A stretch of 64,000 nucleotides of DNA from Entomortierella parvispora E1425 (GCA_020891255.1 BQFW01000009.1:806001-870000); one strand, 5' to 3'. Shown: positions 8,028-58,560, counted from the stretch's first letter. Program-made: numbers and translations. The notes: a model not told the origin generated them from the sequence alone.

Positions 8028-8772
8028 TTAATCTGACGATGATGTCGAACTGGTCACTGCTGCGGTCGAGTCTCGGATATCCTTGTAATTGACCCTGTAG
8101 CCCTTCTTGGCTGCGTTCTCCTCGTCCAAGGCGATTCTCTCCTCCCCTAAAAAAACAAAAAGAAAAAAAATGTAAAAAGAGCCCAGAATAAATGTCAGAT
8201 CCATGGTTTTTGAGAAATCCATGCTCTATCTCGGCATGTCTCCTTCTGTAAAGTTTTCCGACACCATGGCCAGCAACAACAAACGGCGTAGAAAAAAAAT
8301 CTCCTCTTCCCTTCCCGTACACACCATATTTCCTCTTTCCTCTTTCCCTTTTCCTTCCTTCTCTGTTTCCGAAATGATCCGTCTTCCAACTTACATGACA
8401 ACCCTGTCTTTGTAGGGATAGTCTCTGAAGGAACAGCTTGGACTCTCCGACGGAGGTAAATATCGTTCTTGGTCACGGTGTAGAAAGACGCACTCGCTAG
8501 CGAAAATGTACAAAAAGAAATAGAGGTCAATATAGCTTAATCTACCGTATCCTGAAGAGCTCGGATGAAGAAGACTGTTGCCGCTTTAAAACTTACCAAC
8601 AGTCAGGACAGCCCTTTTATATCGATTGATTGAGAGAATATGTTAGAAAATGGTAAGTGTGCGGTGCTTGAAGGACCTGTCTCCTTCCGGGGAAACCCTT
8701 GCGTGTGGCGTAAGTAAAGAATTACCATGTGATCATGACGTGAGAGGGCTTGCTGAGATTGAGACGAGGCAT
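8028..8772 (-). CDS. Small single-TM protein (94 aa), possibly DUF4748-like; exons 8772-8726, 8613-8597, 8496-8395, 8146-8028
   Basis: Hand-spliced with canonical GT-AG sites and a ctaac branch point; exon lengths 47+17+102+119=285 nt keep the frame. Product: MPRLNLSKPSHVMITWAVLTVASASFYTVTKNDIYLRRRVQAVPSETIPTKTGLSWEERIALDEENAAKKGYRVNYKDIRDSTAAVTSSTSSSD. The family call is from remembered resemblance only. Confidence 0.7.
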
Positions 8773-9091
8773 GATGTTACAGTGAATGAACTGAGTATGA
8801 TGGGGATATAGAGTAGGCGTGGATTAATAGATGCGAATGGAGATGAAGAGATAAATAGGTGTCTGCGATGCCGTACCTGTGCATGCATCCGAAGCTCGGG
8901 TCATCGAACTTTGGTGGCGCATTGTTGCTGTCACGTTTTCTTTATTTCCAATCATTCTTGGAAATAAAGGTAGCGTTGGGCTGGGGCGATTTTTTTTTTT
9001 TGACGCCCATGTCCACAATCCCCTGTGTTCCTTTCTTAAGACTGCAACTAAACTTCTATTTCCTTCTTCCCACCCTCATCCTTTCTCCATC

Positions 9092-10153
9092 ATGGCAAGC
9101 ATACAGCGTGCCGCTTTTTCTCGTCTTTCCAGTCTATCGAGACTCGCTCTATCTTCCCCTTCGTCACAGCTCTCAGGACGCCTTCACACACAGCTTGTTC
9201 CCCTCACCATAGGCCACACATATCAGAGAGGTTCGCTACTCATCCGTCAGGGCCAAGCCCCCTTTCAGTGCACATCTCAACGCCCATTTTCATCACAAAA
9301 ATCCACCAATGAGGCTCCAGAAACCGAGATCGAGAAACGGTTGAGGGAGGCCCACCAAGGAGACATCCTGGCTCAATTTAATCTAGGATACGCCTATCTT
9401 CAAGGCGAGGGTGTTCCTCGGGATCTTTCCAAGGCTCTTGAATGGTTCTTGAAATCCGCCAACCAAGGGTTTGCACTTGCCCAGTTCAACTTGGGCAATA
9501 TGTACCGCATGGGCGAGGGCACGCCCCAGGACAACCATCTGGCCTTGGAGTGGTATTTGAAGGCTGGCGAACAAGGATATGCTAGGGCTCAATGTAACCT
9601 TGGCAACATGTACAGTGGTGGCCACGGTGTTCAACAGGACATAGCGAAAGGTTTGGAATGGTATTTAAAGGCTGCCGAACAAGGAGACCAGCATGCGCAG
9701 TGTAATATTGGTCATATGTACAACAAGGGCGAGGTTGTACCGAAGGACGACGGTAAGGCTGGAGAATGGTACTTGAAATCCGCCAAACAGGGTTATGCGA
9801 ATGCGCAGTACCATGTGGGTCTTCAACACGCTTATGGACTGGGAGTTCCGAGGGATTATACCAAAGCAAGGGAATGGTACTTGATGGCCGCCGAGCAGGG
9901 AGACCCCAACGCTCAGTGCAACCTTGGGTCTATGTATTATAATGGTCAAGGCGTGCCACGGGACTTTACCATTGCCGTAGAGTGGGGTTTGAAAGCTGCC
10001 AACCAAGGACATGCGATAGCTCAATTTAACGTGGGCAACATGTACCTACAGGGTACCGGTGTTTCACGGGACAAGTCCAAGGCCTTGGAGTGGTACTTGA
10101 AGGCAGCTAGTCAAGGACTTGTTCCAGCACAGGAGAAGGCCAGCAAGATGTGA
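9092..10153 (+). CDS. Sel1-like repeat (SLR) protein with N-terminal mitochondrial presequence-like leader
   Basis: About seven tandem 36-aa repeats (AQFNLGxMYxxGxGVxxDxxKALEWYLKAAxQG). ATG 9092 begins an R/S/L-rich, nearly acid-free leader (MASIQRAAFSRLSSLSRL...RPFSSQK). Intronless. Confidence 0.9.
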   Translation: MASIQRAAFSRLSSLSRLALSSPSSQLSGRLHTQLVPLTIGHTYQRGSLLIRQGQAPFQCTSQRPFSSQKSTNEAPETEIEKRLREAHQGDILAQFNLGYAYLQGEGVPRDLSKALEWFLKSANQGFALAQFNLGNMYRMGEGTPQDNHLALEWYLKAGEQGYARAQCNLGNMYSGGHGVQQDIAKGLEWYLKAAEQGDQHAQCNIGHMYNKGEVVPKDDGKAGEWYLKSAKQGYANAQYHVGLQHAYGLGVPRDYTKAREWYLMAAEQGDPNAQCNLGSMYYNGQGVPRDFTIAVEWGLKAANQGHAIAQFNVGNMYLQGTGVSRDKSKALEWYLKAASQGLVPAQEKASKM

Positions 10154-10942: not shown

Positions 10943-13900
10943 ATGAAGTCCGTTCTCTGGAACATGAAGATGTTCAGGTCCAGTAACGATAGCAACACTA
11001 GTCTTAATAGCACCCACAGCATCTCTCATCCTACACCTTTACCAATAACCTCCAACAACTCTTCTAAGGCCTTGACGATTTTGTCTCAACACAATCGGTC
11101 AACGCCCAACTTGGAGTCGTTCACTGTTACTTCTACTCGCCCATCGCCATCAATACCTACCTCCTCGTCAACAATCCCTTCAACAACTGCTGCCGCCACT
11201 ATGTCAAATCCATCTGCGCCCTTGCCATTCAACAATACATCAAGTCCTCCAAAGAAACAGCGTGGATTGTTTTTTGGCTTTCAAAACTCGTCCGTTCAAA
11301 GCTTGCTCCAAATGACTTTTCATTCAAACTCAAGTGATCGTGAACTCTCATCATCGTCGTCTTTGAAAGGAGGTCCTCCAGATTCTCCATTCCACTGTAA
11401 TAAGATGGAGATGGTGGATTCTCAGGCGGCTACCTCTTCGTCCTCTTCCTCGGCTTCTAGATCTGTTTTGATGGAAAGCACCACAATCTATTACCACCCT
11501 CCACCCCCGAAACAAGAATATGAAGATGAGGACAAGCTCGAGTGCATGGATACGATGAGGACTGCAGAAAACAAAAAAGGCAAAGTTAAGAACAAGAGTC
11601 GTCGGGACGAACCACCCGAAATGGATTCTTTTGACCAGAGTCGCAAGCAGCAGCATCCACAAAAGCAGCAAAGTAATTGTGGCCAATGTCATCATCATCA
11701 TGGTCCGTCAAAGGACCGCATGCTGTCTCTAGCTTTGTTCGACAGTATGGATGAACTACGGCGAAGACGGCGCGATCTAGGACAACTCGTTGCTGGCAGG
11801 CTCTCTGCCCCGGATATTCGCACTGCGACCTCTAGTTCGATGGCACCCACCCGTCAGGCATCCCCTACACCAACTCATTACAGTCAACAGGAGTATCATT
11901 CTGCTTCTGTGAATTCAGCTGCGTGGCACACAATGAGCCAGATTCAACATCATCGCCGCGACTGTGAATACGCTTTGCAGTTGCAGCAAAAGCAACAAAA
12001 GAACTTGAACGAAGATGAAAGCGCACCGGGAGTTATCGCGTCGCTCGTGGAGTGGAAGGTGAATCAGCCCAGGCAACAACAACAAGATGACCAAAGAAGG
12101 CCGTTCTTGGACAAACAACTTCCTGACATCCCAATTCAAGCCGCCATCACCAGAGGCGGTACAGGGAGCAGGAACCAAAGGAGGAGATCGCAAACAACAG
12201 CAACGAGCAATGCAAGACAAGTCCCCGATGGATTGCCTCTTCCACAACAGCCAGTGGCACCTCCTCGCCCACCTCCACCTCAATTGCCTTCGTCTATATT
12301 TGCCTCTGGAATGACCACGACACATCGCTCTCGATCATCATCCACCATTAAACCAAGGATCAAAGTGGGAAGCACCAACGTGCCCACCCTCTCGGCTCTC
12401 ACATCTCCGCCTCCGACAACCCCTCTGCCTCCGACCCCTGCTTCAAAACCGCAAGCGCCCCTGCTGCCCTCCCCTCTCCCTTCAGATCACCTAGATGTAT
12501 TCTTTCCGCCACCACCTCCTTCATCGACAAAGCCCGTTGTTCCAACTGTGGACACTTCCATATCATGCTCTTCGTCACCCTCCTCGTCGCCATCCTCGTC
12601 GCCTTCGACAGGGGAGCCCAGGATCGACAATCTAGTCAAGGTTGTTGACAGTCTTAGTGATACCGTCGAGACTTTGCAGCGAAAGATTGCCATGATGCTC
12701 ATGCTCGAGGAGCAGGCAAATGCTTCTCCTGGGACAATAATCAACTTGATCAAGAAAGAACCAGGAACAGGGAGGCATCAGTCGGAAATGATGAAGAATC
12801 AGGTTTGTAAGAGAACCATCGCCAGTGCAAGCATCAGGGACAGTTCTGAGTGGCGCCAAACACAGACTTGTGATATCCAGAGTGCAAGCATAGGAGGAGG
12901 ATGCACGCTTGGTAGACGATCCACCACGGCACACTGCTTGATGAGTGGAGTAGAGTCGCAGGCACGACGCAACATTCGGGGATCGACGCAATGGACGACT
13001 TCAACGGTCGCGTCTGATCCCACAGTCACTGCTGAGAGTGTCACTGGTGTTGGTACTGGGATTGCTACCAGCGGTTTGACAGCGTCGTTGGCAGCGACCC
13101 TGTCGAGCTTTATTCCCTTGGTCACTGCTTTGCCGGTCACGAATAGGATCGTGCCACCTTCATCCACTCTGACCCCCGCCACCACAAGTTCGTCTGTCCC
13201 AGTTCGGCCTTCGCGACCAGATGGGTCGAGCCAGGAGTTGAAAGAGGCTCTGGAAGTCATTGACTCGAGGCTGGTTCTCCTGCAATATGAATGGCCTCAA
13301 ATACCTTATATTGCGGCTGCAGATGCCAGAACCACAGAGCCACGCGCTGTGGCTGCCCCATCTTCCGAAGCCGGCATCTCGCCACCTTCTTCATCATCCA
13401 GTAGCTCGTCCTCGTCCACATTTCTTCGACCGCCTCCGCCACCTTCTATCCTGACTGCACCGACAACCACTCCATCAGGTCATCTCGCACCAGCCTCCCC
13501 TGCTCCTCGTTCATCTACTTCGCCTCTCTCTCAATCGACCACTTACCCGTGCCTTTCCACGAATCAGTTTCTTTTCCCTGCACCACCGGCCCTTCCCTTG
13601 CCATCCCTACCAGCCCCACCGTTTTCCCCTGACGAAATACTCCAAAAAAGCAAGACCGCTTCGTCCTATGCATGCGAGCTCGTGAGGAAAAACACCCGTC
13701 GGTGCCAGACCCTCGATGACGAACTACAATGCATGGTGAATCGCCTTCAAAGCGAACTCAGACAGCAATACAGACGGCAACAGCAACGACGTCGTCTTCA
13801 TGAGCTTGAGCTGGCAGCTGGATTAGGATCGAACCCCAATACAGGCTTGTCAGCAACGACGACGACGACCGCTATGGGAGAGAGAAGAGGCTCTTGGAAA

Positions 13901-47315: not shown

Positions 47316-47740
47316 CCTGGCATGGGGTGTAGTAAATGAAATGGGCAGTGAACAATGCAATGCTTCCCCTCCTCGAGTCCATGTGGAGTTCAGAATCGCG
47401 TCTGATTAAGGGGTGCTCAGCTCGGCTTTTTTTTTTTTTTTTTTTTTTTTTTGGCAATGGTCATGCTCGCTACCAACCTTTCCCTACAGCGCCGTAAAAA
47501 ATACTGCAAGTTCAGATTTTTATTTGCGAAATTGGAAACCAAAGATGTGAAAAGTGCAATTTCAGACTATACATCCTGAGGACTATCGCTTCCATGAAAT
47601 GTCGTCCAGGTCTCAAGGTCCTGAAATTGAGTGAAAATGTCCTGGTTGCCGCGTGCGGACCAAATTACAGGAAAAATGAGGAGCAGTTGAACTTGAAAGA
47701 AAACCCAAAAAGCGAAAGAAAGAAAAAAAAAAAAAAAAAA

Positions 47741-47790
47741 GGGTTTATCTATTTGACAACCCAGGTTGTTCGTTTTACCTGACAACCCAC
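47741..47790 (+). repeat. Left terminal inverted repeat of the MULE
   Basis: 46/50 identity to the reverse complement of the right TIR. The TGACAACCCA motif recurs at about 47754, 47780 and 47846, with a degenerate copy at about 47821. Confidence 0.93.
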
Positions 47791-47878
47791 TCTATATTTG
47801 GTTAGTCTCGTTTTTTATTCGGCAACCCACCTGTCATTCCTCAATTGACAACCCAGGTTGCCAAACAAACGTTTATTT

Positions 47879-50530
47879 TTATGAGTGCTGTCTAGAATTG
47901 TGACCTTCCCCGCTGCACACTCCACACTTCGTTGATTTTTTTTTTGTCTCCATGCTACTCTTTATCCGAGAAGTCCTCGGTCTGCCCTTCGTCTTTGTAT
48001 AGTGAGGATCCTTCATACCTTCTTCGCCTGCCCCCCTCACAATGACACGGTTTAGGCCATCTTTAACTGTTTCGAATACTTCTGGATTGGAGTTCACGGT
48101 GTCCATGATATTCTTCATCAGGCCAGATATCTCTCCAATGCGGCGTTTTTTGGAAAGGTTGCGTTTATCAACCCCCGACAGGGATGGCACTGAGGGGAAA
48201 ACCTTCATGATATCGCTCATGAAAGAAGAAGCAGGCTCTCCCTCTGCACTCCCCACCTGAGCGACCGTCTTCTGCGTTTTTGCGCTCAAAAACGCCCCTG
48301 AGAGATCAAGATCTGTTAGGTCCTGCAGTTCTTCTTTAAACCACCGCATCGGAATAAGCCTGACATGATACTTGCATCTGTCACTAACTTGCATCAGATG
48401 GAAATAGTGTCGACATACAAATCCGCTGTTTTGGAGGAGGAGGCAAGTACAAATGTACGAGCCATCAGCCAGTAAAAGTATGTGCTGAAGTGACTTTCGC
48501 TCCGTGTCCAAGCGGAACGTCACGTCGAAGATTTGTACAATTCGATCAGAACCAACGATTGTCTGGATGGACTGGAGAGCTCATTTCGCGATCGTCTTTT
48601 GACGATCTCTCAATCTAAGGACAAAGAGAAGAATAACGGCTTAGTACCTCTATCTGGTCTTAGGATTGCGCTTGGGTATTGGAATGATGTACAAGTACTT
48701 ACTTCCTCGAAATCACCTCCTTCGATTGATCGTGGAGCACAGGCGTCTATACCTGTGTGTGGATTGGACTGATACAAAACAGAGCGCGACATCTCTAACT
48801 TCATCTGACTTTTTGCTGCGATGCCAAGATAGCGATTGTTTGCATCGATAACATCGGCAAACATTTGCTGAACAAACGTCGACGTTGCGGGATCAACCGT
48901 TGTATCCGTCTTGTAGAGAATATACTTTGAAGTCTGGGCTTCATTTGATAGCTTCTTTTCAATTGCCTCGAACAGTGCTGGAAGGGACGTCTTGCCATTG
49001 ACGGCCCTTTTGATGGCCGCATTCATACTCTCCACACGCTGAGTCGACTGCATTCCGGCGGTAAATCTTGTCCCAACCCAAGGCCAAGCCCAGTGCTCGC
49101 GCTTCTCGCTTATCCTTTTCAGGTAACCCTCAATCTTTGGCTTATCAACACCAAAGACCGCAACATGCTCTGACCATCTACGCTCAAAATCGGAGGCCGT
49201 AAGCGCGTTTCGGGTTGTCCAAAAAGCTGATATAAAATCATTCCAGTCTTTGCCTAGCGCTCCGTGGAGGTTTTTGTTCAGGTTTTGTCGCAGATGCCAG
49301 ATACAGTTCAAGACGGTGGTCTTGCTTATAGTTGTGGCACAAGCGGCCTCCATAGCGGGATCTTCGTCGACGAAAATGATATGAGGATATACGTTGTCGC
49401 TTGCCGCCAACAGTTGCTCTAGAATCCACTCATAGTCCTCCACTGATTCCCCAGAAACCAATGAACACCCTACCAAACGACTCTTTCCTGCATTGTCGAT
49501 AATGACTATAACATTAAGAGGCATGCCGAAACGGTTCGTCTTGTAAGTGTTATCGCTGATGACAACATCGCGGTAGCGTCGGTAGAGGTATCTTTGAGAA
49601 GGGCTCATCCAGAACATCCTTCTGAGCCGGCCATTTTCATCCAGATCGGTAGCAAAGAACCAGTCTTTATCGTTGCGCGTTTTATCCTGTAGAATCTTGT
49701 GGAGCTCTGCAGCCTCGGAGCCACCGATGTGAGCACTGTTTTTTGCTTTCTGGATGGCATTTGCGACTGTCCGAAGATCGAACGCTTTGTCTGGCCATTC
49801 ATGTTGAAGCATGTAAACAATAAACTTGGGATCACATTTGCCTGCATGGGTGGTAATAAGCTGGAGCATTTCGGCACTGAGTCGTTTATCACGCTGGTTG
49901 GACTCCAGGATGTCGCATTTCTTGAGTTCGTGGCAGTGGTCTGTGACAAGGGAAGTAATACGCCAACGTGGAAACAACTCCCTTGGAGACCGAACAACGA
50001 TTTGGCATGGGCAGCACTCGCGGCTGGAGGTGCAATTGCGGTGCTTATCTGGGTCAACATTCTTTTGCGGAACATGTTTTCCAGCCTTCTTGCAACCAAA
50101 AATTACTATTCATCGGCAAACCATACTTGTGTCAAAAAGAATTGATCCATAGAGAAAAAAAAACAACCTGCAGATTTTAAGTACCTACCTCGGGGACTTT
50201 GGCCATTCATCCTCTTGAGTCTGGACTGCATCCTTCTCAGGAAAAATCCTTGCTTGCGAGCCCATGCGTGGAGTTTTTTCTTCTAGTTCTTCAAGAGTTT
50301 CATGCAACTGGCCGATATAAGGTGTCCACGGCAGGCTGTCACCCTCTTCAGCACTGTTGCCTGTGATGGCTATGGCGGCAGCCGCTACCTCTGCCCTGGC
50401 CCCACATGAAGAGGGTCCGTCAGCTGCAAGAGCATCACTTGTAATGGTTACGGCGGCGGCCGCTGCCTCTGCCCTGGCCCCACATGAAGAGGGTCCGACA
50501 TTTAAGAAAGCATCACTTGTAATGGTCTCT
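47879..50530 (-). CDS. FAR1/FHY3-like MULE transposase (FAR1 DNA-binding domain, DDE core, SWIM finger, zinc knuckle); introns 50188-50106 and from 48702; possibly frameshifted
   Basis: LHAWARKQGF...VIFGCKKAG...CPCQIVVR...WRITSLVTDHCHEL (FAR1/WRKY-GCM1 fold). DVVISDNTYKTNRFGMPL, IFVDEDPAM, CIWHLRQN and STQRVESMN (DDE). ICTCLLLQNSGFVCRHYF (SWIM). CGVCSGEGHN (knuckle). Confidence 0.92.
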
Positions 50531-51955
50531 CTAGAATAGCCGCATCGGCTACAGCTGTAGTGACCCCATCTTCGGTAGGTATCTCTTCATTGACTGCGAC
50601 TTTTACAATGGCGTTGTCTGTGATGATTGAGTCAGTTGTAACTATGTCCGGATCATTTGCCGACACAATATCGAGATCAGCCACCCTTGCCACCCCTTGG
50701 CCTCGAGAAGCATGTGCTGCATGTTCGATCTAGATGAATTGAGTATTAATCTACGGTGGTCGGACAACGGGGGATTTGTGTCATACGTTACAAACAAGCA
50801 AAGATTCACCTTGTTGTAGCCGGTGGCCAGCTTCAAAAGCCTCAATCGATGATGTGCAGATCGTTCGTGAGTCCAGAGTTCTATTTCAGGATTCATTCTC
50901 CTCTCGACAGCATTGATGGAGTTGACAGCGCACGATCCACTGCTAGCTGGTTGCCGTGGGACATCGAGATGCTCGATGTGGCTGCTCCAACGATCTATAT
51001 CAAGCCCACAGCATCTTATCCATTGTCGTATCGCTTGACAGGCCTCACGAGGTGTGGGATAAGAGAGGGAATCCCCAAATGAGATCTGACATTTAACGAA
51101 ATCGACCTCGATCGCACCCCAATGAGATGGCATATAAACAATCGAGAATGCCTTTTCAACTCGCCCGCTTCGGAGCTCGTCCCTTTTCCATTCCAGGTAT
51201 AGATTCTTTCGCCAGTTGTTGAGTTGAGTAGGTGTGATCAAAAGGTATCGATTGCTTGCCCCATACGACTCGGCAAAGAGCTGCAACACCGTGCGCACGA
51301 CCTCGTCATTAATGAAGCACTCCTTCATGAGACAAAACGCGTTTCCAATGGCCAATGGCGCCTCAGAAGTTGGCTGAAACTCCCAATGGATGATGCCTGA
51401 GGTATTGGAAATTAGGTCGCGGATCCAATCGGCAAAGTTGCGATCCGAGACGGCATCGATCCAGTTAAACATCTCCATCGCTTGAATGATGAAAGTGTGC
51501 GTCTGCACCGCGCCGAGTAAGATTTTGACCGAGGCATGCGAGAAATCTCCAACGCCATGGATGCGAATGCCCCACGCCTTTTGAGACACTGACGCACCAA
51601 CTATAAATAAACATATTGTAACTGTGCTGGTCAGGAGTTTTGCCAATTGACACCTAAACGAAAAGAGCAGCCGATGTTTTCTCTTATTGAACCTACGCAG
51701 CATTTCGTTGGCCTTCATAACAACATCTTGCGAAGGTAGCGTTTTGAGAATTGCAACTCTGGCTTCGAATATTCTCTCTTTGGGCGGTGGCAGCTCATAT
51801 ATGACCTCGACCTCGGTACAAGTTTTAGTAATCGGAAGGGGGATTTTCAGCAGTGCCTTGCCAGTTTGTAGCCTTTGCCAGTATTGGCTGTACATCACTT
51901 TCGATTCTTTCGACGTCCCTGGGTCGTCCACAAGATGATTAACAGCTGACGACAT
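50502..51955 (-). CDS. Ulp1-like (peptidase C48) SUMO protease carried by the MULE; intron 50809-50730; possibly the N-terminal part of the transposase gene
   Basis: CFINDEVV...IVYMPSHWGAIEVDFVKCQISFGDSL...VPRQPASSGSCAV gives the His-Asp-(Gln)-Cys arrangement of Ulp1-family proteases. Confidence 0.8.
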
Positions 51956-52204
51956 CCTATATTTTTTTTAAATGCCAAAATAGACTGTATCAGCAAAACG
52001 CTCCAAAGAACTTCAGTAGGTACGAGACAGACAACAAACCCCGTACAGAGAAGTATGGCTCGGCTGAGGTTATAAGATTCTTGTGAATCTTCGTCGGTGC
52101 CTACTGCCGTAGCTTTATATCAGAAGTTCCAACGTTTCATTGTCTCCGCTTCGAGTAGAGTAACTCAAAACCCCGAACACTATTTGCAGTCTATGTGTAT
52201 ATAC

Positions 52205-55200
52205 CATATATGTACCATAGTCGGCCAAAAAAAAAAAAAGATCCATTTTGCCTTCTGTATGCATGCAATTGACAGGCATCCTCTAAGTCATGGAGGGTGA
52301 TAGTCCAGTGAGCTCTGACCTTGTCCGGTCCGGAAGACTGGAGCGGGTATCAGCCGTGTTTCTTTCCTCTGGTATTGATCTACCCCCGGTCAACCCTCAG
52401 TCAAAAAAAAAAAAAAAAAACCTCTGCATGCAAGAGTAGACCATTCCTAATTGGGACTTCTGGCGACTCGCAAGGACTCGCAAGACGGTATGTGTACCAT
52501 GGTCGGCCAAAAGAAAAAAAAAAGTGCATTTTGCCTTCTGTATGCATGCAATTGACAGACATCCCCTAGGTCATAGAGGGTGATAGTCCAGTGGGCTCTG
52601 ACCTTGTCCGGTCCGGAAGACTGGAGCGGGTATCAGCTGTGTTTCTTTCCTCTTGTATTGATCTACCCCCGGTCAACCCTCGGTCAAATAAAAAAAAATC
52701 CTCTGCATGCAAGAGTAGACCATTCCTAATTGGGACTTCTGGCGACTCGCAAGGACTCGCAAGACGGTACGTGTACCATGATCGGCCAAAAGAAAAAAAA
52801 AAGTGCATTTTGCCTTCTGTATGCATGCAATTGACAGACATCCCCTAGGTCATAGAGGGTGATAGTCCAGTGGGCTCTGACCTTGTCCGGTCCGGAAGAC
52901 TGGAGCGGGTATCAGCTGTGTTTCTTTCCTCTTGTATTGATCTACCCCCGGTCAACCCTCGGTCAAATAAAAAAAAAAAGCCTTTGCATGCAACAGTAGA
53001 CCATTCCTAATTGGGACTTCTGGCGACTCGCAAGGACTCGCAAGACGGTATGTGTACCATGGTCGGCCAAAAGAAAAAAAAAAGTGCATTTTGCCTTCTG
53101 TATGCATGCAATTGACAGGCATCCTCTAAGTCATGGAGGGTGATAGTCCAGTGAGCTCTGACCTTGTCCGGTCCGGAAGACTGGAGCGGGTATCAGCCGT
53201 GTTTCTTTCCTCTGGTATTGATCTACCCCCGGTCAACCCTCAGTCAAAAAAAAAAAAAAAAAACCTCTGCATGCAAGAGTAGACCATTCCTAATTGGGAC
53301 TTCTGGCGACTCGCAAGGACTCGCAAGACGGTATGTGTACCATGATCGGCCAAAAGAAAAAAAAAAGTGCATTTTGCCTTCTGTATGCATGCAATTGACA
53401 GGCATCCCCTAGGTCATAGAGGATGATAGTCCAGTGAGCTCTGACCTTGTCCGGTCCGGAAGACTGGAGCGGGTATCAGCTGTGTTTTCTTTCCTCTTGT
53501 ATTGATCTACCCCCGGTCAACCCTCGGTCAAATAAAAAAAAATCCTCTGCATGCAAGAGTAGACCATTCCTAATTGGGACTTCTGGCGACTCGCAAGGAC
53601 TCGCAAGACGGTACGTGTACCATGATCGGCCAAAAGAAAAAAAAAAGTGCATTTTGCCTTCTGTATGCATGCAATTGACAGACATCCCCTAGGTCATAGA
53701 GGGTGATAGTCCAGTGGGCTCTGACCTTGTCCGGTCCGGAAGACTGGAGCGGGTATCAGCCGTGTTTCTTTCCTCTGGTATTGATCTACCCCCGGTCAAC
53801 CCTCGGTCAAAAAAAAAAAAAAAAAACCTCTGCATGCAAGAGTAGACCATTCCTAATTGGGACTTCTGGCGACTCGCAAGGACTCGCAAGACGGTATGTG
53901 TACCATGATCGGCCAAAAGAAAAAAAAAAGTGCATTTTGCCTTCTGTATGCATGCAATTGACAGGCATCCCCTAGGTCATAGAGGATGATAGTCCAGTGA
54001 GCTCTGACCTTGTCCGGTCCGGAAGACTGGAGCGGGTATCAGCTGTGTTTCTTTCCTCTTGTATTGATCTACCCCCGGTCAACCCTCGGTCAAATAAAAA
54101 AAAAAAATCCTTTGCATGCAACAGTAGACCATTCCTAATTGGGACTTCTGGCGACTCGCAAGGACTCGCAAGACGGTATGTGTACCATGGTCGGCCAAAA
54201 GAAAAAAAAAAGTGCATTTTGCCTTCTGTATGCATGCAATTGACAGGCATCCTCTAAGTCATGGAGGGTGATAGTCCAGTGAGCTCTGACCTTGTCCGGT
54301 CCGGAAGACTGGAGCGGGTATCAGCCGTGTTTCTTTCCTCTGGTATTGATCTACCCCCGGTCAACCCTCAGTCAAAAAAAAAAAAAAAAAAACCTCTGCA
54401 TGCAAGAGTAGACCATTCCTAATTGGGACTTCTGGCGACTCGCAAGGACTCGCAAGACGGTATGTGTACCATGATCGGCCAAAAGAAAAAAAAAAGTGCA
54501 TTTTGCCTTCTGTATGCATGCAATTGGCAGACATCCCCTAGGTCATAGAGGATGATAGTCCAGTGAGCTCTGACCTTGTCCGGTCCGGAAGACTGGAGCG
54601 GGTATCAGCTGTGTTTCTTTCCTCTTGTATTGATCTACCCCCGGTCAACCCTCGGTCAAATAAAAAAAAATCCTCTGCATGCAAGAGTAGACCATTCCTA
54701 ATTGGGACTTCTGGCGACTCGCAAGGACTCGCAAGACGGTACGTGTACCATGATCGGCCAAAAGAAAAAAAAAAGTGCATTTTGCCTTCTGTATGCATGC
54801 AATTGACAGACATCCCCTAGGTCATAGAGGGTGACAGTCCAGTGGGCTCTGACCTTGTCCGGTCCGGAAGACTGGAGCGGGTATCAGCTGTGTTTCTTTC
54901 CTCTTGTATTGATCTACCCCCGGTCAACCCTCGGTCAAATAAAAAAAAAAAGCCTTTGCATGCAACAGTAGACCATTCCTAATTGGGACTTCTGGCGACT
55001 CGCAAGGACTCGCAAGACGGTATGTGTACCATGATCGGCCAAAAGAAAAAAAAAAGTGCATTTTGCCTTCTGTATGCATGCAATTGACAGACATCCCCTC
55101 GGTCATAGAGGATGATAGTCCAGTGGGCTCTGACCTTGTCTGGATCAGAAGACTGGAGCGGGTATCAGCTGTGTTTCTTTCCTCTTGTATTGATCTACCC

Positions 55201-55397
55201 CCGGTCAACCCTCGGTCAAATAAAAAAAAAGCCTTTGCATGCAACAGTAGACCATTCCTAATTGGGACTTCTGGCGACTCGCAAGGACTCGCAAGACGGT
55301 ACGTGTACCATGGTCGGCCAAAAGAAAAAAAGATACATTTTGCCCTCTGTATGCATGCCATTGACAGACATCCCCTAGGTCATAGAGGATGATGGTC
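52205..55397. repeat. Tandem array of about 11.3 copies of a ~281-bp unit inside the MULE
   Basis: GTACCAT unit starts at about 52212, 52494, 52773, 53054, 53337, 53617, 53900, 54182, 54466, 54745, 55026 and 55305. Units are near-identical, differing in A-tract length and about 13 SNP sites. The many short track ORFs here are repeat artefacts. Confidence 0.97.
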
Positions 55398-55550
55398 CGA
55401 CATGTTCTTCTGGTTCGAAACAAAGGGACTGACTCGACTGACTCGTACATCCAGGCTTCTTGTGTCAGCAACTCCCACATGTATAAATATGTGTACTTGC
55501 GGCATCCAGTTCTGTATCTTGTCCTCCTCATCGTTCTCACCTCTTCCAAC

Positions 55551-56402
55551 ATGCCTCGTGGTGCTTGCACTTACGGCTATTGCGCGCTAGGTCTCCTCCC
55601 CCCTGCCGAACCCAAGACCAAAAATCAGAAGAACCATGTTGCAGGGTATCACGTCGACAACCCCATCAAGTTCATGTGCGGGTACACTGATCGACAAGTC
55701 ACCTTTAGTCGAATTCCCACAAAACACATGGATTTCGTCTGCTACTGTGGCCTGACGTTCACCCTTAACTCTTCGATCCATCGCCATTACCATTACTGTG
55801 CCGTTGCCAGGGACGCCGCCCTAAATGCAATCGCACATCCACCTCCTCCTGGTGCAGGTGGTGCAGGCGATGGCAATGGCGTTATTGTTGCGCCGGCGCC
55901 TCCTTCAACGGCCCTGGTGGTAGCGGAGCGCAGCGTCGGGAGCATTCTGGAGGAAAAGTTGATTGAGCAACATCAAGCCTTCCTGGAGACGTTCACAGGA
56001 CAGAGCGCGAAGCTCGTCGAGAGCATGACCCAGTCTCAGTTGTCGTTTCTGAACACCTTCACCGCTTCGTATGCTGAACAAGCTGTGGCACATCAGCGCA
56101 GCATCGCTGAACATAACCGCTTGGCCTTAGAGGAGCAGCGCACGGCCCTCGAGGAGCAGCGAGCTGCCATTGAGATGCAGCGAGCAGCTGTTGAGGAACA
56201 GAGAGTGTTCTACAATCGCCATCAAAACAATCAAGCAGAGATAATGGCCGAGCAGAAGCTTACAAGGGACGAGGTTAGAAACCTCATGTCACTCAAGCGC
56301 GATCGATCTTTCACGTTGGAAGTCAGCGAGCGAGCACTCAAAGGCCTTCAGAGTGACCCATCTTACATGGTCAGCCCCTGCCAGGACGACGAGGACATGT
56401 GA
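55551..56402 (+). CDS. MULE accessory protein with two putative zinc fingers and a coiled coil (283 aa)
   Basis: ATG at 55551 (MPRGAC...). C-x4-C-x17-H-x4-H (CTYGYC...KNHVAGYH), FVCYCGLTFTLNSSIHRHYHYC (C2HC-like), and heptads ALEEQRT/ALEEQRA/AIEMQRA/AVEEQRV. Intronless. Confidence 0.75.
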   Translation: MPRGACTYGYCALGLLPPAEPKTKNQKNHVAGYHVDNPIKFMCGYTDRQVTFSRIPTKHMDFVCYCGLTFTLNSSIHRHYHYCAVARDAALNAIAHPPPPGAGGAGDGNGVIVAPAPPSTALVVAERSVGSILEEKLIEQHQAFLETFTGQSAKLVESMTQSQLSFLNTFTASYAEQAVAHQRSIAEHNRLALEEQRTALEEQRAAIEMQRAAVEEQRVFYNRHQNNQAEIMAEQKLTRDEVRNLMSLKRDRSFTLEVSERALKGLQSDPSYMVSPCQDDEDM

Positions 56403-56649
56403 AAGACAGATAGTGCGCAATCCCACGTCGACGAAGTGTAACAGGTTATGTTCGCAATTATTCAATAAAAATATTCTTGCGAAATATCTTCTGATGCTAT
56501 GGCGGACGAGGTGGACTTTTTTTTTTTTACATATTATTTGCTATGTCGAGACAGTGAAGCGAAGTGCGAGAACAAACTACTAACAATGAAGCCCGAATCC
56601 CCGCGCAACAAATGCCACGACTCATCGCTGTTTAATAAAGAATAAAATG

Positions 56650-57240
56650 TTACAAAAGTGTCGATATATGAACCTGGCCACGCACACCAGCCAGTAAGCG
56701 CTGGTCTGCCAGCTTAAGGTCATCTTGGGCATCTGGGCAACGGCCTTGGTGGTGGCCGGAGTGAGGTTTACCGCATTGGCAGGTGTCTGGTGGTAAGATC
56801 GTAGCAAATGCATTGTTCCAAGGTTGGCCTCGCTGTGCTTGCTTCTTCATCTTGGAGCGGATGCCTTGAGTCTTCTCCCAGGCAATAGTAACCTCGCCGC
56901 GTGTCTTCCGGATACGTGCAAGAGTATCCCTATCCTGACGACGGATAAGTTGATGAGCAACTGCGACCACGACCGAGTGAGGGCCTTTAATAATTGGAGT
57001 CCAGGCCTTGATCGAAGCGCAGTGTAACACTCCTTGGTAGGCAGTGACGACCGACTGAGCCGATGCCAACGGGGCTGGTGCCAACGGGCTGGTGATCTGT
57101 CCCCTCACAGGAGGACAGGTCGTTGGCGAGTCATGGAAGGCAGAGTACAATGATGTCCACAAAGCCGTGTCCGATGGCTGGTACCATGGAGGCGGTTTCG
57201 GGCGGCAACTTCGGGTTTGCGGGCTTGTTGCGAACGAGGT
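56650..57240 (-). other. ATG-less open frame next to the right TIR, possibly a captured gene fragment
   Basis: About 200 codons are open with protein-like composition and a CQCGKPHSGHHQGRCP motif. There is no in-frame ATG; the track start lies inside the TIR. Confidence 0.35.
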
Positions 57241-57294
57241 GGAGCTCACTATCTGACAACCCAGGTTTCCATGCAATTTTCCAAAGTGTGACTG

Positions 57295-57344
57295 GTGGGT
57301 TGTCAAACAAAACGAACAACCTGGGTTGTCAAATAGATAAATCC
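57295..57344 (-). repeat. Right terminal inverted repeat of the MULE
   Basis: GTGGGTTGTCAAACAAAACGAACAACCTGGGTTGTCAAATAGATAAATCC, with an extra subterminal TGACAACCCAGG at about 57254. Confidence 0.93.
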
Positions 57345-57371
57345 AAAAAAAGAAAGCGAAGCAAAAAAGGA

Positions 57372-57466
57372 TTTCCCAGCCGAGGATCGAACTCGGGATC
57401 TTTACGTGACTTTGGTATATTTTGAAAATATAAGCATAACGCCTTAACCGACTTGGCCACTGGGAA
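57372..57466 (-). tRNA. tRNA-Ile(TAT) with 21-nt intron (57428-57408)
   Basis: Acceptor stem TTCCCAG/CTGGGAA, D arm GCCAAGTCGGTTAAGGC, anticodon stem TTATG/CGTAA with loop CT-TAT-A[intron]A, T arm CCGAG-TTCGATC-CTCGG, discriminator A, and a T6 terminator just downstream. Confidence 0.93.
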
Positions 57467-57679
57467 AAATTTCAAAGAGCCCGAGACAAAAATTGCCTTT
57501 TATGCCAGAGGATCAGCATGCTACACGTGATTGCAGCGCATGCGACTATTGTACTTACGGTGGCGTTTTTCAGCGCCCAATATGCTTCCGGAGAGCCATT
57601 TCAGGGATTCGATTGATCAAGACTCGGATTCCATTGTTCTTGGTTCCTCACTCCTCTGCTCCATTCACCACTTACAATC

Positions 57680-58560
57680 ATGCTGCATCTTCTCGGAGTC
57701 AACTTGCCCGACCAGAAGTTGGTGGTATGTTCCCAACAATTAAACAGGACGACCGGATCGGCATTCAGGAACCCGACTACATCACGGAAGCTGGGCATTT
57801 CAGACAGATCGCCCTTCAGGAACTTTGTGTTGATCGCTTTGACGAGTGCGGAACGTCAACTCATGGCCGTCGGGACCATCAGTCTTAATTATAATAGTGA
57901 TACTGGATGATTGGCAAGACTCCAATAACTCTCACCGGAATACTTTGACCAAAGCCGGAACCCTCTCCGCCGTTTTGTTTTTTTCCGGTGGCACTTCACT
58001 GACCCGTTTTTCATGTTCCTGTGTATTCCCACTACAGCAATACGCCCTTCCTCTTTTCTACGGTATCGGTCAAAAGACTTCGCTCAAGGTCTTGGCCTCT
58101 TTGTCGATTCACAAGTCATGCAAAATTGCCGACTTGTCAGAACCCCAGGTCAACCAGCTTTCATCGTTGTTGTCGGATATGAAGATTGAGTCGGATTTGC
58201 GCAAGGAGATCAGAGCCAACATCATGCACCATCGTTCCATTGGTTCCTATGTGGGCCGTCGTCATGCCATGGGATTGCCCGTTCGCGGTCAAAACACGAG
58301 GAACAACGCAAAGACTGCCAGACGCTTGAACGGACGTTGGCTCAAGTCCGAGAAGAGAGAGTACTCTTCCTCAACAAGGTACGGAAGCACTGTCTATGGT
58401 GCAGAGATCGGGATTGATCTGCGGGATATCTCTGGAGAGTTTTTTTGTTACTGAAGCTGACCTTTTGTTTACCTCCGCGCCTTGTTTTCTACGGTTTAGA
58501 TCCGCCATCCCTGCTCCCGACTCTCCTTTCGCCAGCTTCTTCAACCGCTCTTGGTTCTAA
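57680..58560 (+). CDS. SWS2: Mitochondrial ribosomal protein uS13m, 3 exons
   Basis: MLHLLGVNLPDQKLV|QYALPLFYGIGQKTSLKVLA...IGSYVGRRHAMGLPVRGQNTRNNAKTARRLN; GT-AG introns join in frame. Confidence 0.93.

Follow-up and report, generated by a model that had tools for sequence, protein, structure and literature searches.

A fungal Mutator-like transposon with a Ulp1-like domain on its transposase, a zinc-finger gene and an internal tandem array, inserted beside tRNA genes in Mortierellaceae

A stretch of 64,000 nucleotides from Entomortierella parvispora E1425 (GCA_020891255.1 BQFW01000009.1:806001-870000), hereafter the window, includes a unit of 9,604 bp (47741-57344) in which transposase and protease sequences, a large tandem array and a zinc-finger (ZnF) gene lie side by side between terminal inverted repeats (TIRs) of 50 nt. 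The locus raises the question of what type of element assembles such parts, and of whether the parts serve a common purpose. A first-pass annotation had viewed the unit as a Mutator-like element (MULE) encoding a candidate anti-silencing system, in which the ZnF protein would read the array and the protease would remove SUMO. The data described here probably mark the unit as a Mutator-like DNA transposon that is autonomous and transcribed and was active very recently, featuring a fusion transposase, the ZnF gene, the array, and insertion in the flanks of tRNA genes.

The limits set for the unit were confirmed at both ends. The TIR core TTGACAACCCAGGTTG has four matches in the window, confined to the element ends, 0.14 being expected, and near-identical TIR sequences (3430-3477/11406-11453) bound a relative found in Linnemannia elongata (locus L001). 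Target-site duplications (TSDs) of 9 bp flank the TIRs. Exact duplications are found in four other elements (T9 in L003 and L005, TTTTTCCTT in L004, TAATTTTGC in L001), and the TSDs, clean or near-clean in all five, are mostly T-rich when read on the sense strand of the neighbouring tRNA gene. The motif G(A/G)CAACCC occurs 14 times in the window against 4.5 expected, and 7 of the 14 matches reside within 115 bp of the element ends; these subterminal repeats are likely the binding sites of the transposase. Assignment to the Mutator superfamily relies on a MULE-type DDE domain, TIRs accompanied by a 9-bp TSD, and several copies at different loci, all of which were found. Directly outside the left end there are a T26 run (47427-47452) and an A-rich run (47715-47740); such long homopolymers are frequent in the loci compared here, and fit the T-rich target preference of the element. 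An ORF (open reading frame) of 218 aa near the right end, 56650-57306(-), was dropped as a coding candidate, having no Pfam match and not being conserved in L. elongata.

The transposase and the Ulp1-like protease are one fused protein, encoded by one spliced gene on the minus strand. Its modules follow one another in the order Ulp1-like domain, acidic repeat linker, FAR1, MULE, SWIM. Contigs of two runs from the same sample, X1 and X2, were aligned to 47741-52206. X1 contigs are unspliced, as expected of DNA, and contain none of the four intron joints. One X2 contig of 3,355 nt skips 48615-48702, 50106-50188 and 50730-50809, and a further X2 joint spans 51601-51696; all four joints have GT..AG borders when read on the minus strand. 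Removal of the four introns, with indel fixes at 50274, 48574 and 50528, yields an ORF of 1,243 aa from the ATG at 51955 to the stop at 47879. The form found in the transcript contig, one 78-bp linker repeat shorter, is also open (1,217 aa). In the metagenomic relatives P0014 and P0016, the protease-like part and the start of FAR1 lie within one uninterrupted ORF, and it is these ORFs, together with the spliced X2 contig, that establish a one-gene fusion.

In the assembly at face value, the transposase frame stops at residue 425. An extra A at 50274 is present in all three assembled copies, and both X1 and X2 have one A fewer, so the extra base is an assembly error. An element broken by a frameshift at this position was accordingly rejected, the extra A being missing from DNA and RNA-like contigs alike. 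Assembly and reads disagree also at 50154, by one more A in a T-run of an intron.

The FAR1/DDE/SWIM transposase announced for the minus strand was borne out. The ORF 48610-49977 matches the Pfam families MULE, ZSWIM1-3_RNaseH-like and Transposase_mut (PF00872, E 2e-5). The second FAR1 exon, taken alone, matches FAR1, a DNA-binding domain of the WRKY-GCM1 type, with an E value of 1e-4, which falls short of the Pfam cut-off. SWIM has no Pfam match in the fusion transposase, and is seen as a CxCx9CxH signature only. Linker repeats differ among relatives at the equivalent place, as at 2156-2586 in the metagenome contig L011. Upstream of the gene, X2 depth drops from 31.8 at 51913-52061 to 0 at 52062-52206, and coverage thus ends about 200 bp before the array. 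Another X2 joint, at 51733-51982, leaves out 248 nt with plus-strand GT..AG borders (depth 29, short side 28); it may be an artefact, or reflect antisense transcription and splicing across the 5' end of the fusion gene.

The N-terminal part of the fusion protein is a divergent predicted protease of clan CE, C48 type, with a complete catalytic set. Thirteen homologues of the domain were found, every named one from Mortierellaceae, and in the 14 sequences (window plus homologues) H278, D295 and C342 are invariant, and Q335 is nearly so (ORF numbering). Pfam PF02902 (Peptidase C48) does not match the window ORF, and matches 4 of the 14 family relatives, with a best E value of 0.0035. A profile built from the 14 sequences, searched against PDB, matched SENP1, Ulp1, SENP3 and SENP5 and nothing else (best E 9e-4); in the match to SENP1, His, Asp, Gln and Cys are all aligned. 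The AlphaFold2 model of the exon 50810-51598 has a mean pLDDT (predicted local distance difference test) of 73.5, and most 10-residue blocks of its catalytic half (about residues 130-210) exceed 90. The top 37 Foldseek matches of this model in PDB are SENP, Ulp1, NEDP1 and NopD structures (best E 6e-8, probability 1.0), led by SENP2, SENP1, Ulp1, SENP5, SENP7 and NEDP1. The first-pass annotation was therefore right in placing a Ulp1 domain with its catalytic residues on the minus strand, and wrong in viewing it as a gene separate from the transposase.

Near-identical sequences with different flanks occur at four loci on three contigs of GCA_020891255.1 (the window, L003, L004 and L005). L004 and L005 are full copies, which over the 4.4-kb left arm differ from the window by 7 inserted letters at 6 places and by no substitution. 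The right arm of the copies is 99.9% identical to the window. L003 is a 4.6-kb derivative with an internal deletion, in which window position 49050 is joined to mid-array; it keeps the ZnF gene at 100% aa identity, and its deletion junction appears also as a loose end in the X1 DNA contigs. Such near-identity among copies indicates that the family moved very recently. Runs X3-X11, which carry the same species label, contain almost none of the words of the element (X9 and X3 matched 34-44-bp pieces only), and the element may be absent from other strains.

Relatives have been identified in other Mortierellaceae. In L. elongata, L001 is an 8.0-kb element with the same order (SWIM-MULE-Ulp, array, ZnF gene on the other strand) and aa identities of 40-63%, and L002 is a degenerate second copy. 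Derivatives of about 400-430 bp with family TIRs, resembling miniature inverted-repeat transposable elements (MITEs), are also found in this species (L001 13817-14233; L002 5912-6313 and 18739-19166). A 2.3-kb derivative in Dissophora ornata (L006) retains the 3' end of the transposase and an intact ZnF gene. Only about 350 bp separate TIR and Ulp1 start in three further relatives, L010 of Mortierella polycephala and the metagenome contigs L011 and L015, and no ZnF gene or array is found in this interval. A metagenome scan with the protease profile returned three short loci only. The four parts, expected to travel together, do so in the three full E. parvispora copies and in L. elongata L001, whereas L010, L011 and L015 have no ZnF gene or array beside the Ulp1 start. 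The existence of relatives devoid of ZnF gene and array at this position makes the module dispensable for the family; judged from gene order across these loci, it is a conserved accessory of one subclade, rather than a family requirement.

Elements of this family reside next to tRNA genes. The tRNA-Ile(UAU) gene adjoining the right end is the single tRNA gene in the 64-kb window, and every element with both ends visible is located 24-110 bp downstream of a tRNA gene (Table 1). At least nine insertions on the 3' side of tRNA genes were counted, in four genera and one metagenome; the element may be turned towards the tRNA gene with its left or its right end. The chance of a single such placement in the window is about 0.003, so the joint result is not due to chance. 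Relatives that lack the ZnF gene also sit at tRNA genes; targeting thus probably belongs to the fusion transposase, and the ZnF protein would not be needed for it. At L001, a different element of about 730 bp (11525-12256), with 48-nt TIRs that are 96% complementary, lies 70 bp past the MULE right end, and at L006 a foldback or palindromic element of about 430 bp (8700-9130) is nested between the D. ornata MULE derivative and the tRNA-Lys gene. Regions flanking tRNA genes appear to collect several transposon families. Beyond the tRNA gene in the window, the plus-strand ORF 57846-58454 is probably a host gene adjoining the insertion site; judged by eye only, its end resembles ribosomal protein uS13.

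Table 1. Features of the element in the window, and tRNA genes next to family members at other loci (positions in window coordinates unless a locus is named)
Feature	Position	Strand	Description	Basis
Left TIR	47741..47790		50 nt, 92% complementary to 57295-57344	
Right TIR	57295..57344		Identical ends found in copies L003, L004, L005	
Left TSD copy	47732..47740		9 bp, A9, AAAAAAAAA	Flank comparison
Right TSD copy	57345-57353		AAAAAAAGA, 8/9 match to left copy A9	
Subterminal G(A/G)CAACCC repeats	47755..47854; 57255-57330	+ (first group)	Four in the first group, three in the second	Motif count
Fusion transposase gene	47879..51955	-	Exons 51955-51697, 51600-50810, 50729-50189, 50105-48703, 48614-47879	
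SWIM-type signature	48407..48451	-	CxCx9CxH	Read from translation
MULE DDE core	49282..49566	-	Positions 1-99/99, E about 5e-20	Pfam PF10551
Coding tandem repeat	50362..50526	-	78 bp, 2.1 copies, linker between protease and FAR1	
Ulp1/SENP-like domain	50810..51598	-	Clan CE, C48-type	Family profile and predicted structure
Catalytic codons	His 51122-51124, Asp 51071-51073, Gln 50951-50953, Cys 50930-50932	-		
Unique upstream region of fusion gene	51956..52206		X2 contigs end near 52011	
Tandem array	52207..55398		Period 279, 11.4 copies, 95% matches	Tandem Repeats Finder
Accessory ZnF gene	55551..56402	+	283 aa, intact ORF	
tRNA-Ile(UAU) gene	57369..57467	-	3' end 24 bp from right TIR	ARAGORN
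Element L003			tRNA-Gln, 58 bp from tRNA 3' end	
Element L004			tRNA-Ile(AAU), 62 bp from tRNA 3' end	
Element L005			tRNA-Pro, 37 bp from tRNA 3' end	
Element L001			tRNA-Leu, 108 bp from tRNA 3' end	
MITE-like derivative, L001 (417 bp)	L001 13817-14233		tRNA-Met, about 75 bp from tRNA 3' end	
Two MITEs, L002			tRNA-Pro, 76 and 96 bp from tRNA 3' end	
Element L010			tRNA-Arg, 112 bp from tRNA 3' end	
Element L011			tRNA-Leu, about 35 bp from tRNA 3' end	
Element L006			tRNA-Lys, about 50 bp once the nested foldback element is discounted	

On the other side of the array, the plus-strand gene for a coiled-coil protein with two zinc fingers is present as had been described. The fingers occupy residues 1-95, and are of the types CX4C..HX4H (ligands C6, C11, H29, H34) and CXCX12HX3C (C64, C66, H79, C83). 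A linker predicted to be disordered (residues 104-127) separates them from a single long helix, a coiled coil of about 140 residues (about 130-268) in the model. In an alignment of 30 sequences C6, C11, C66 and H79 are invariant, the four other ligands are at least 90% conserved, and the N-terminal 95 residues make up the conserved module of the family. Finger 2 matches a finger of ZBTB22 (E 2e-4), and resembles classical C2H2/C2HC fingers. The model (pLDDT 86.8) features a small strand-helix domain, with strand pairs followed by helices at pLDDT >90; structure searches with it gave nothing significant, weak C2H2 matches only. Pfam searches found neither DUF1985 nor DUF287, the VANC domains, in the protein or its relatives, and because of this it is at best an analogue of VANC.

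An exhaustive HMMER search for the ZnF family retrieved 61 clusters, all named members being from Mortierellaceae. A shorter annotated protein of E. parvispora, P0002, is 100% identical to the ZnF protein over the first 131 residues. Comparison of E. parvispora with L. elongata gives a ratio of nonsynonymous to synonymous substitution rates (dN/dS) of about 0.2, with dS saturated; for two copies within L. elongata, the ratio is about 0.35 in each domain. On these sequence comparisons, the gene is restricted to Mortierellaceae and evolves under purifying selection. As to occurrence outside elements, distant family members (L007-L009) lie among host genes with no detectable transposase nearby, and the close ones are found inside elements.

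The 3.2-kb array lies in the divergent promoter region, as first noted, filling the space between the start codons at 51955 and 55551. It can be split into 11 units of 279-284 bp. The 279-bp unit occurs solely inside copies of the element, and array length is identical in L004 and L005. Arrays are found at the equivalent position in L001 (857 bp, units of about 101 and 210 bp) and L002 (108 bp, 2.2 copies). These two are homologous to each other, and no similarity was detected between them and the E. parvispora unit, local alignment scores falling within the shuffle range. A CTCGCA-type hexamer shared by the arrays of the two genera was dismissed, being expected by chance. No array motif is enriched in the other non-coding parts of the element, the sharing of 8-mers being explained by homopolymers. 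The array sequence GTCAACCC, present once per unit, was tried as a TIR motif; it is one mismatch away from G(A/G)CAACCC, too weak a likeness to count.

Several observations weigh against the description of the unit as an autonomous, transcribed MULE that targets tRNA flanks. Part of the association with tRNA genes could stem from the T-rich 9-mers used as targets, since the terminators of RNA polymerase III (Pol III) are themselves T-runs. L015 has a TIR with no tRNA gene in the 2.4 kb outside it, the other end being unseen. Run X2 is labelled 'DNA?', and was classed as RNA from its behaviour; what it provides is an assembled contig, which is not a single molecule, and the evidence for expression spans the left arm (47741-52206), on the side of the fusion gene. 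At 48574 the window copy lacks a GA carried by X1 and X2 reads and by three other copies, and may be defective rather than mis-assembled. For the C inserted at 50528, support is limited to copy L005 and the reading frame.

If the unit is such a transposon, the transposase would bind the subterminal G(A/G)CAACCC repeats, and cut and paste the element. Insertion generates 9-bp duplications at mostly T-rich sites downstream of tRNA genes. The fusion transposase might reach these flanks by contacting the Pol III apparatus or its open chromatin. The ZnF coiled-coil protein may be a dimeric DNA-binding accessory factor, maintained by selection in one subclade, which most likely would regulate the bidirectional promoter and the array of its own element; the array itself may be viewed as a fast-evolving promoter-proximal repeat. 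A scheme joining these functions more tightly, with the Ulp1-like domain reading sumoylated Pol III machinery to steer insertion towards safe sites past tRNA genes, and the ZnF protein acting on the array to keep the bidirectional promoter open, is a long shot.

Other readings have been considered. That neither ZnF gene nor array serves the element, the former being a host gene captured in Pack-MULE fashion and the latter the neutral outcome of replication slippage, is unlikely. The distant ZnF members found among host genes, the relatives lacking the gene, and the unrelatedness of array sequences between genera are what such passengers would leave; the ZnF gene is instead intact, has the same place and orientation in elements 40-63% identical, and shows dN/dS values of about 0.2 and 0.35. 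Its named homologues are all from Mortierellaceae, the close ones inside elements, and an array recurs at the equivalent site in three independent elements. The anti-silencing system of the first-pass annotation, modelled by analogy on VANDAL/VANC, would require that the ZnF protein binds array motifs, and that the protease strips SUMO from heterochromatin factors, so that promoters stay active. The array lies exactly between the two divergent genes, and its position is kept while its sequence is replaced between genera, matching the dynamics of VANC targets (PMC5735166). Purifying selection acts on the ZnF gene, which deletion derivatives in two genera (L003, L006) retain, and the element is transcribed on the fusion-gene side (X2). 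The proposal is hard to reconcile with a ZnF protein lacking homology to VANC (DUF1985/DUF287, PMC5735166), with relatives that sit at tRNA sites with neither ZnF gene nor array beside the Ulp1 start, and with array k-mers that, homopolymers apart, are not enriched elsewhere in the element. Moreover, protease and transposase form one protein, an arrangement known from many unrelated elements; fusions of this kind in animal and plant Mutator elements and in Ginger point to a role in transposition itself, rather than to a partnership specific to the ZnF protein (PMC2836005). What stands of the proposal is that the parts travel together in some elements, that the ZnF gene is selected and that the array turns over; as a whole, a VANC-like system is decidedly improbable.

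It is also quite unlikely, as an account of the domain, that the Ulp1-like part acts mainly by anchoring the transposase at tRNA genes through sumoylated Pol III machinery. Such guidance by SUMO would agree with the tRNA adjacency of every fully visible element, with ZnF-less relatives that keep the Ulp1-like domain, and with the conservation of domain and catalytic residues across the family. The link is purely correlative, and target sites could instead be chosen by the FAR1 domain or through the preference for T-rich sequence. No tRNA targeting is reported for the Ulp1-bearing Mutator elements known from plants and animals (PMC2836005). In yeast, the SUMO found on chromatin is concentrated at tRNA genes and at genes for ribosomal proteins (PMC4448685), and for the tRNA genes this makes a SUMO-guided targeting role of the protease-like domain a testable idea.

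Some features of the element have already been described singly, namely Ulp1 domains on Mutator elements (PMC2836005), two-gene fungal MULEs (PMC5014426) and DNA transposons inserting into tRNA genes, such as Dada (PMC3706591). Ulp1-domain Mutator elements are known as KI-MULEs in plants, and from hydra and lancelet, and Ginger1 transposases also carry Ulp1 (PMC2836005). All share with the present element a cut-and-paste DDE transposase that has a C48/Ulp1-type domain on it or fused to it. In the present case the domain precedes FAR1-MULE-SWIM at the N-terminal side, is not directly recognised by Pfam, and resides in Mucoromycota, the fusion being backed by a spliced contig; a second gene, a promoter array and tRNA-flank insertion are further differences. 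MuDR (mudrA/mudrB) and Mutyl of Yarrowia lipolytica (PMC5014426) are likewise autonomous MULEs with 9-bp TSDs and a second gene which is not universal in the superfamily. No sequence relation was found between the ZnF protein and MURB, and in contrast to those elements the two genes point away here from an array lying between them, a protease is part of the transposase, and insertion occurs beside tRNA genes.

VANDAL elements are not known to have TIRs. Binding and demethylation have been demonstrated for the VANC proteins of VANDAL21 and VANDAL6 (PMC5735166, PMC10398659). These feature DUF1985/DUF287, whereas the protein encoded here has predicted zinc fingers, and repeats are gathered in one 3.2-kb array between divergent genes.

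Elements that target the flanks of tRNA genes follow a classic safe-haven strategy. To our knowledge, such targeting is known in mechanistic detail for retrotransposons only. Insertion associated with tRNA genes, and the strategy it serves, are shared with Ty1, Ty3, the TRE elements of Dictyostelium and Dada (PMC3706591, PMC8869645). Ty and TRE are retroelements, in contrast to the MULE described here, which is a DNA transposon; Dada belongs to another superfamily and has its insertion sites at fixed positions within tRNA or snRNA genes, whereas the MULE resides at variable distance (24-110 bp) downstream of many different tRNA genes. In a literature search, Dada was the only DNA transposon reported as tRNA-targeting, and inside genes; the search returned no MULE targeting tRNA flanks, nor any description of the present family from Mortierellaceae.

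A young, expressed MULE combining an intact one-protein transposase with a tRNA-flank habit that is consistent across several genera would offer a workable system to learn how a DDE transposase finds Pol III genes. It would bear also on the role of the protease domains found time and again on plant, animal and now fungal transposases. The conserved ZnF gene and its array raise a separable question, that of a transposon-encoded regulator or anti-silencer outside plants. For targeted insertion in the oleaginous Mortierellaceae, the element is a candidate tool.

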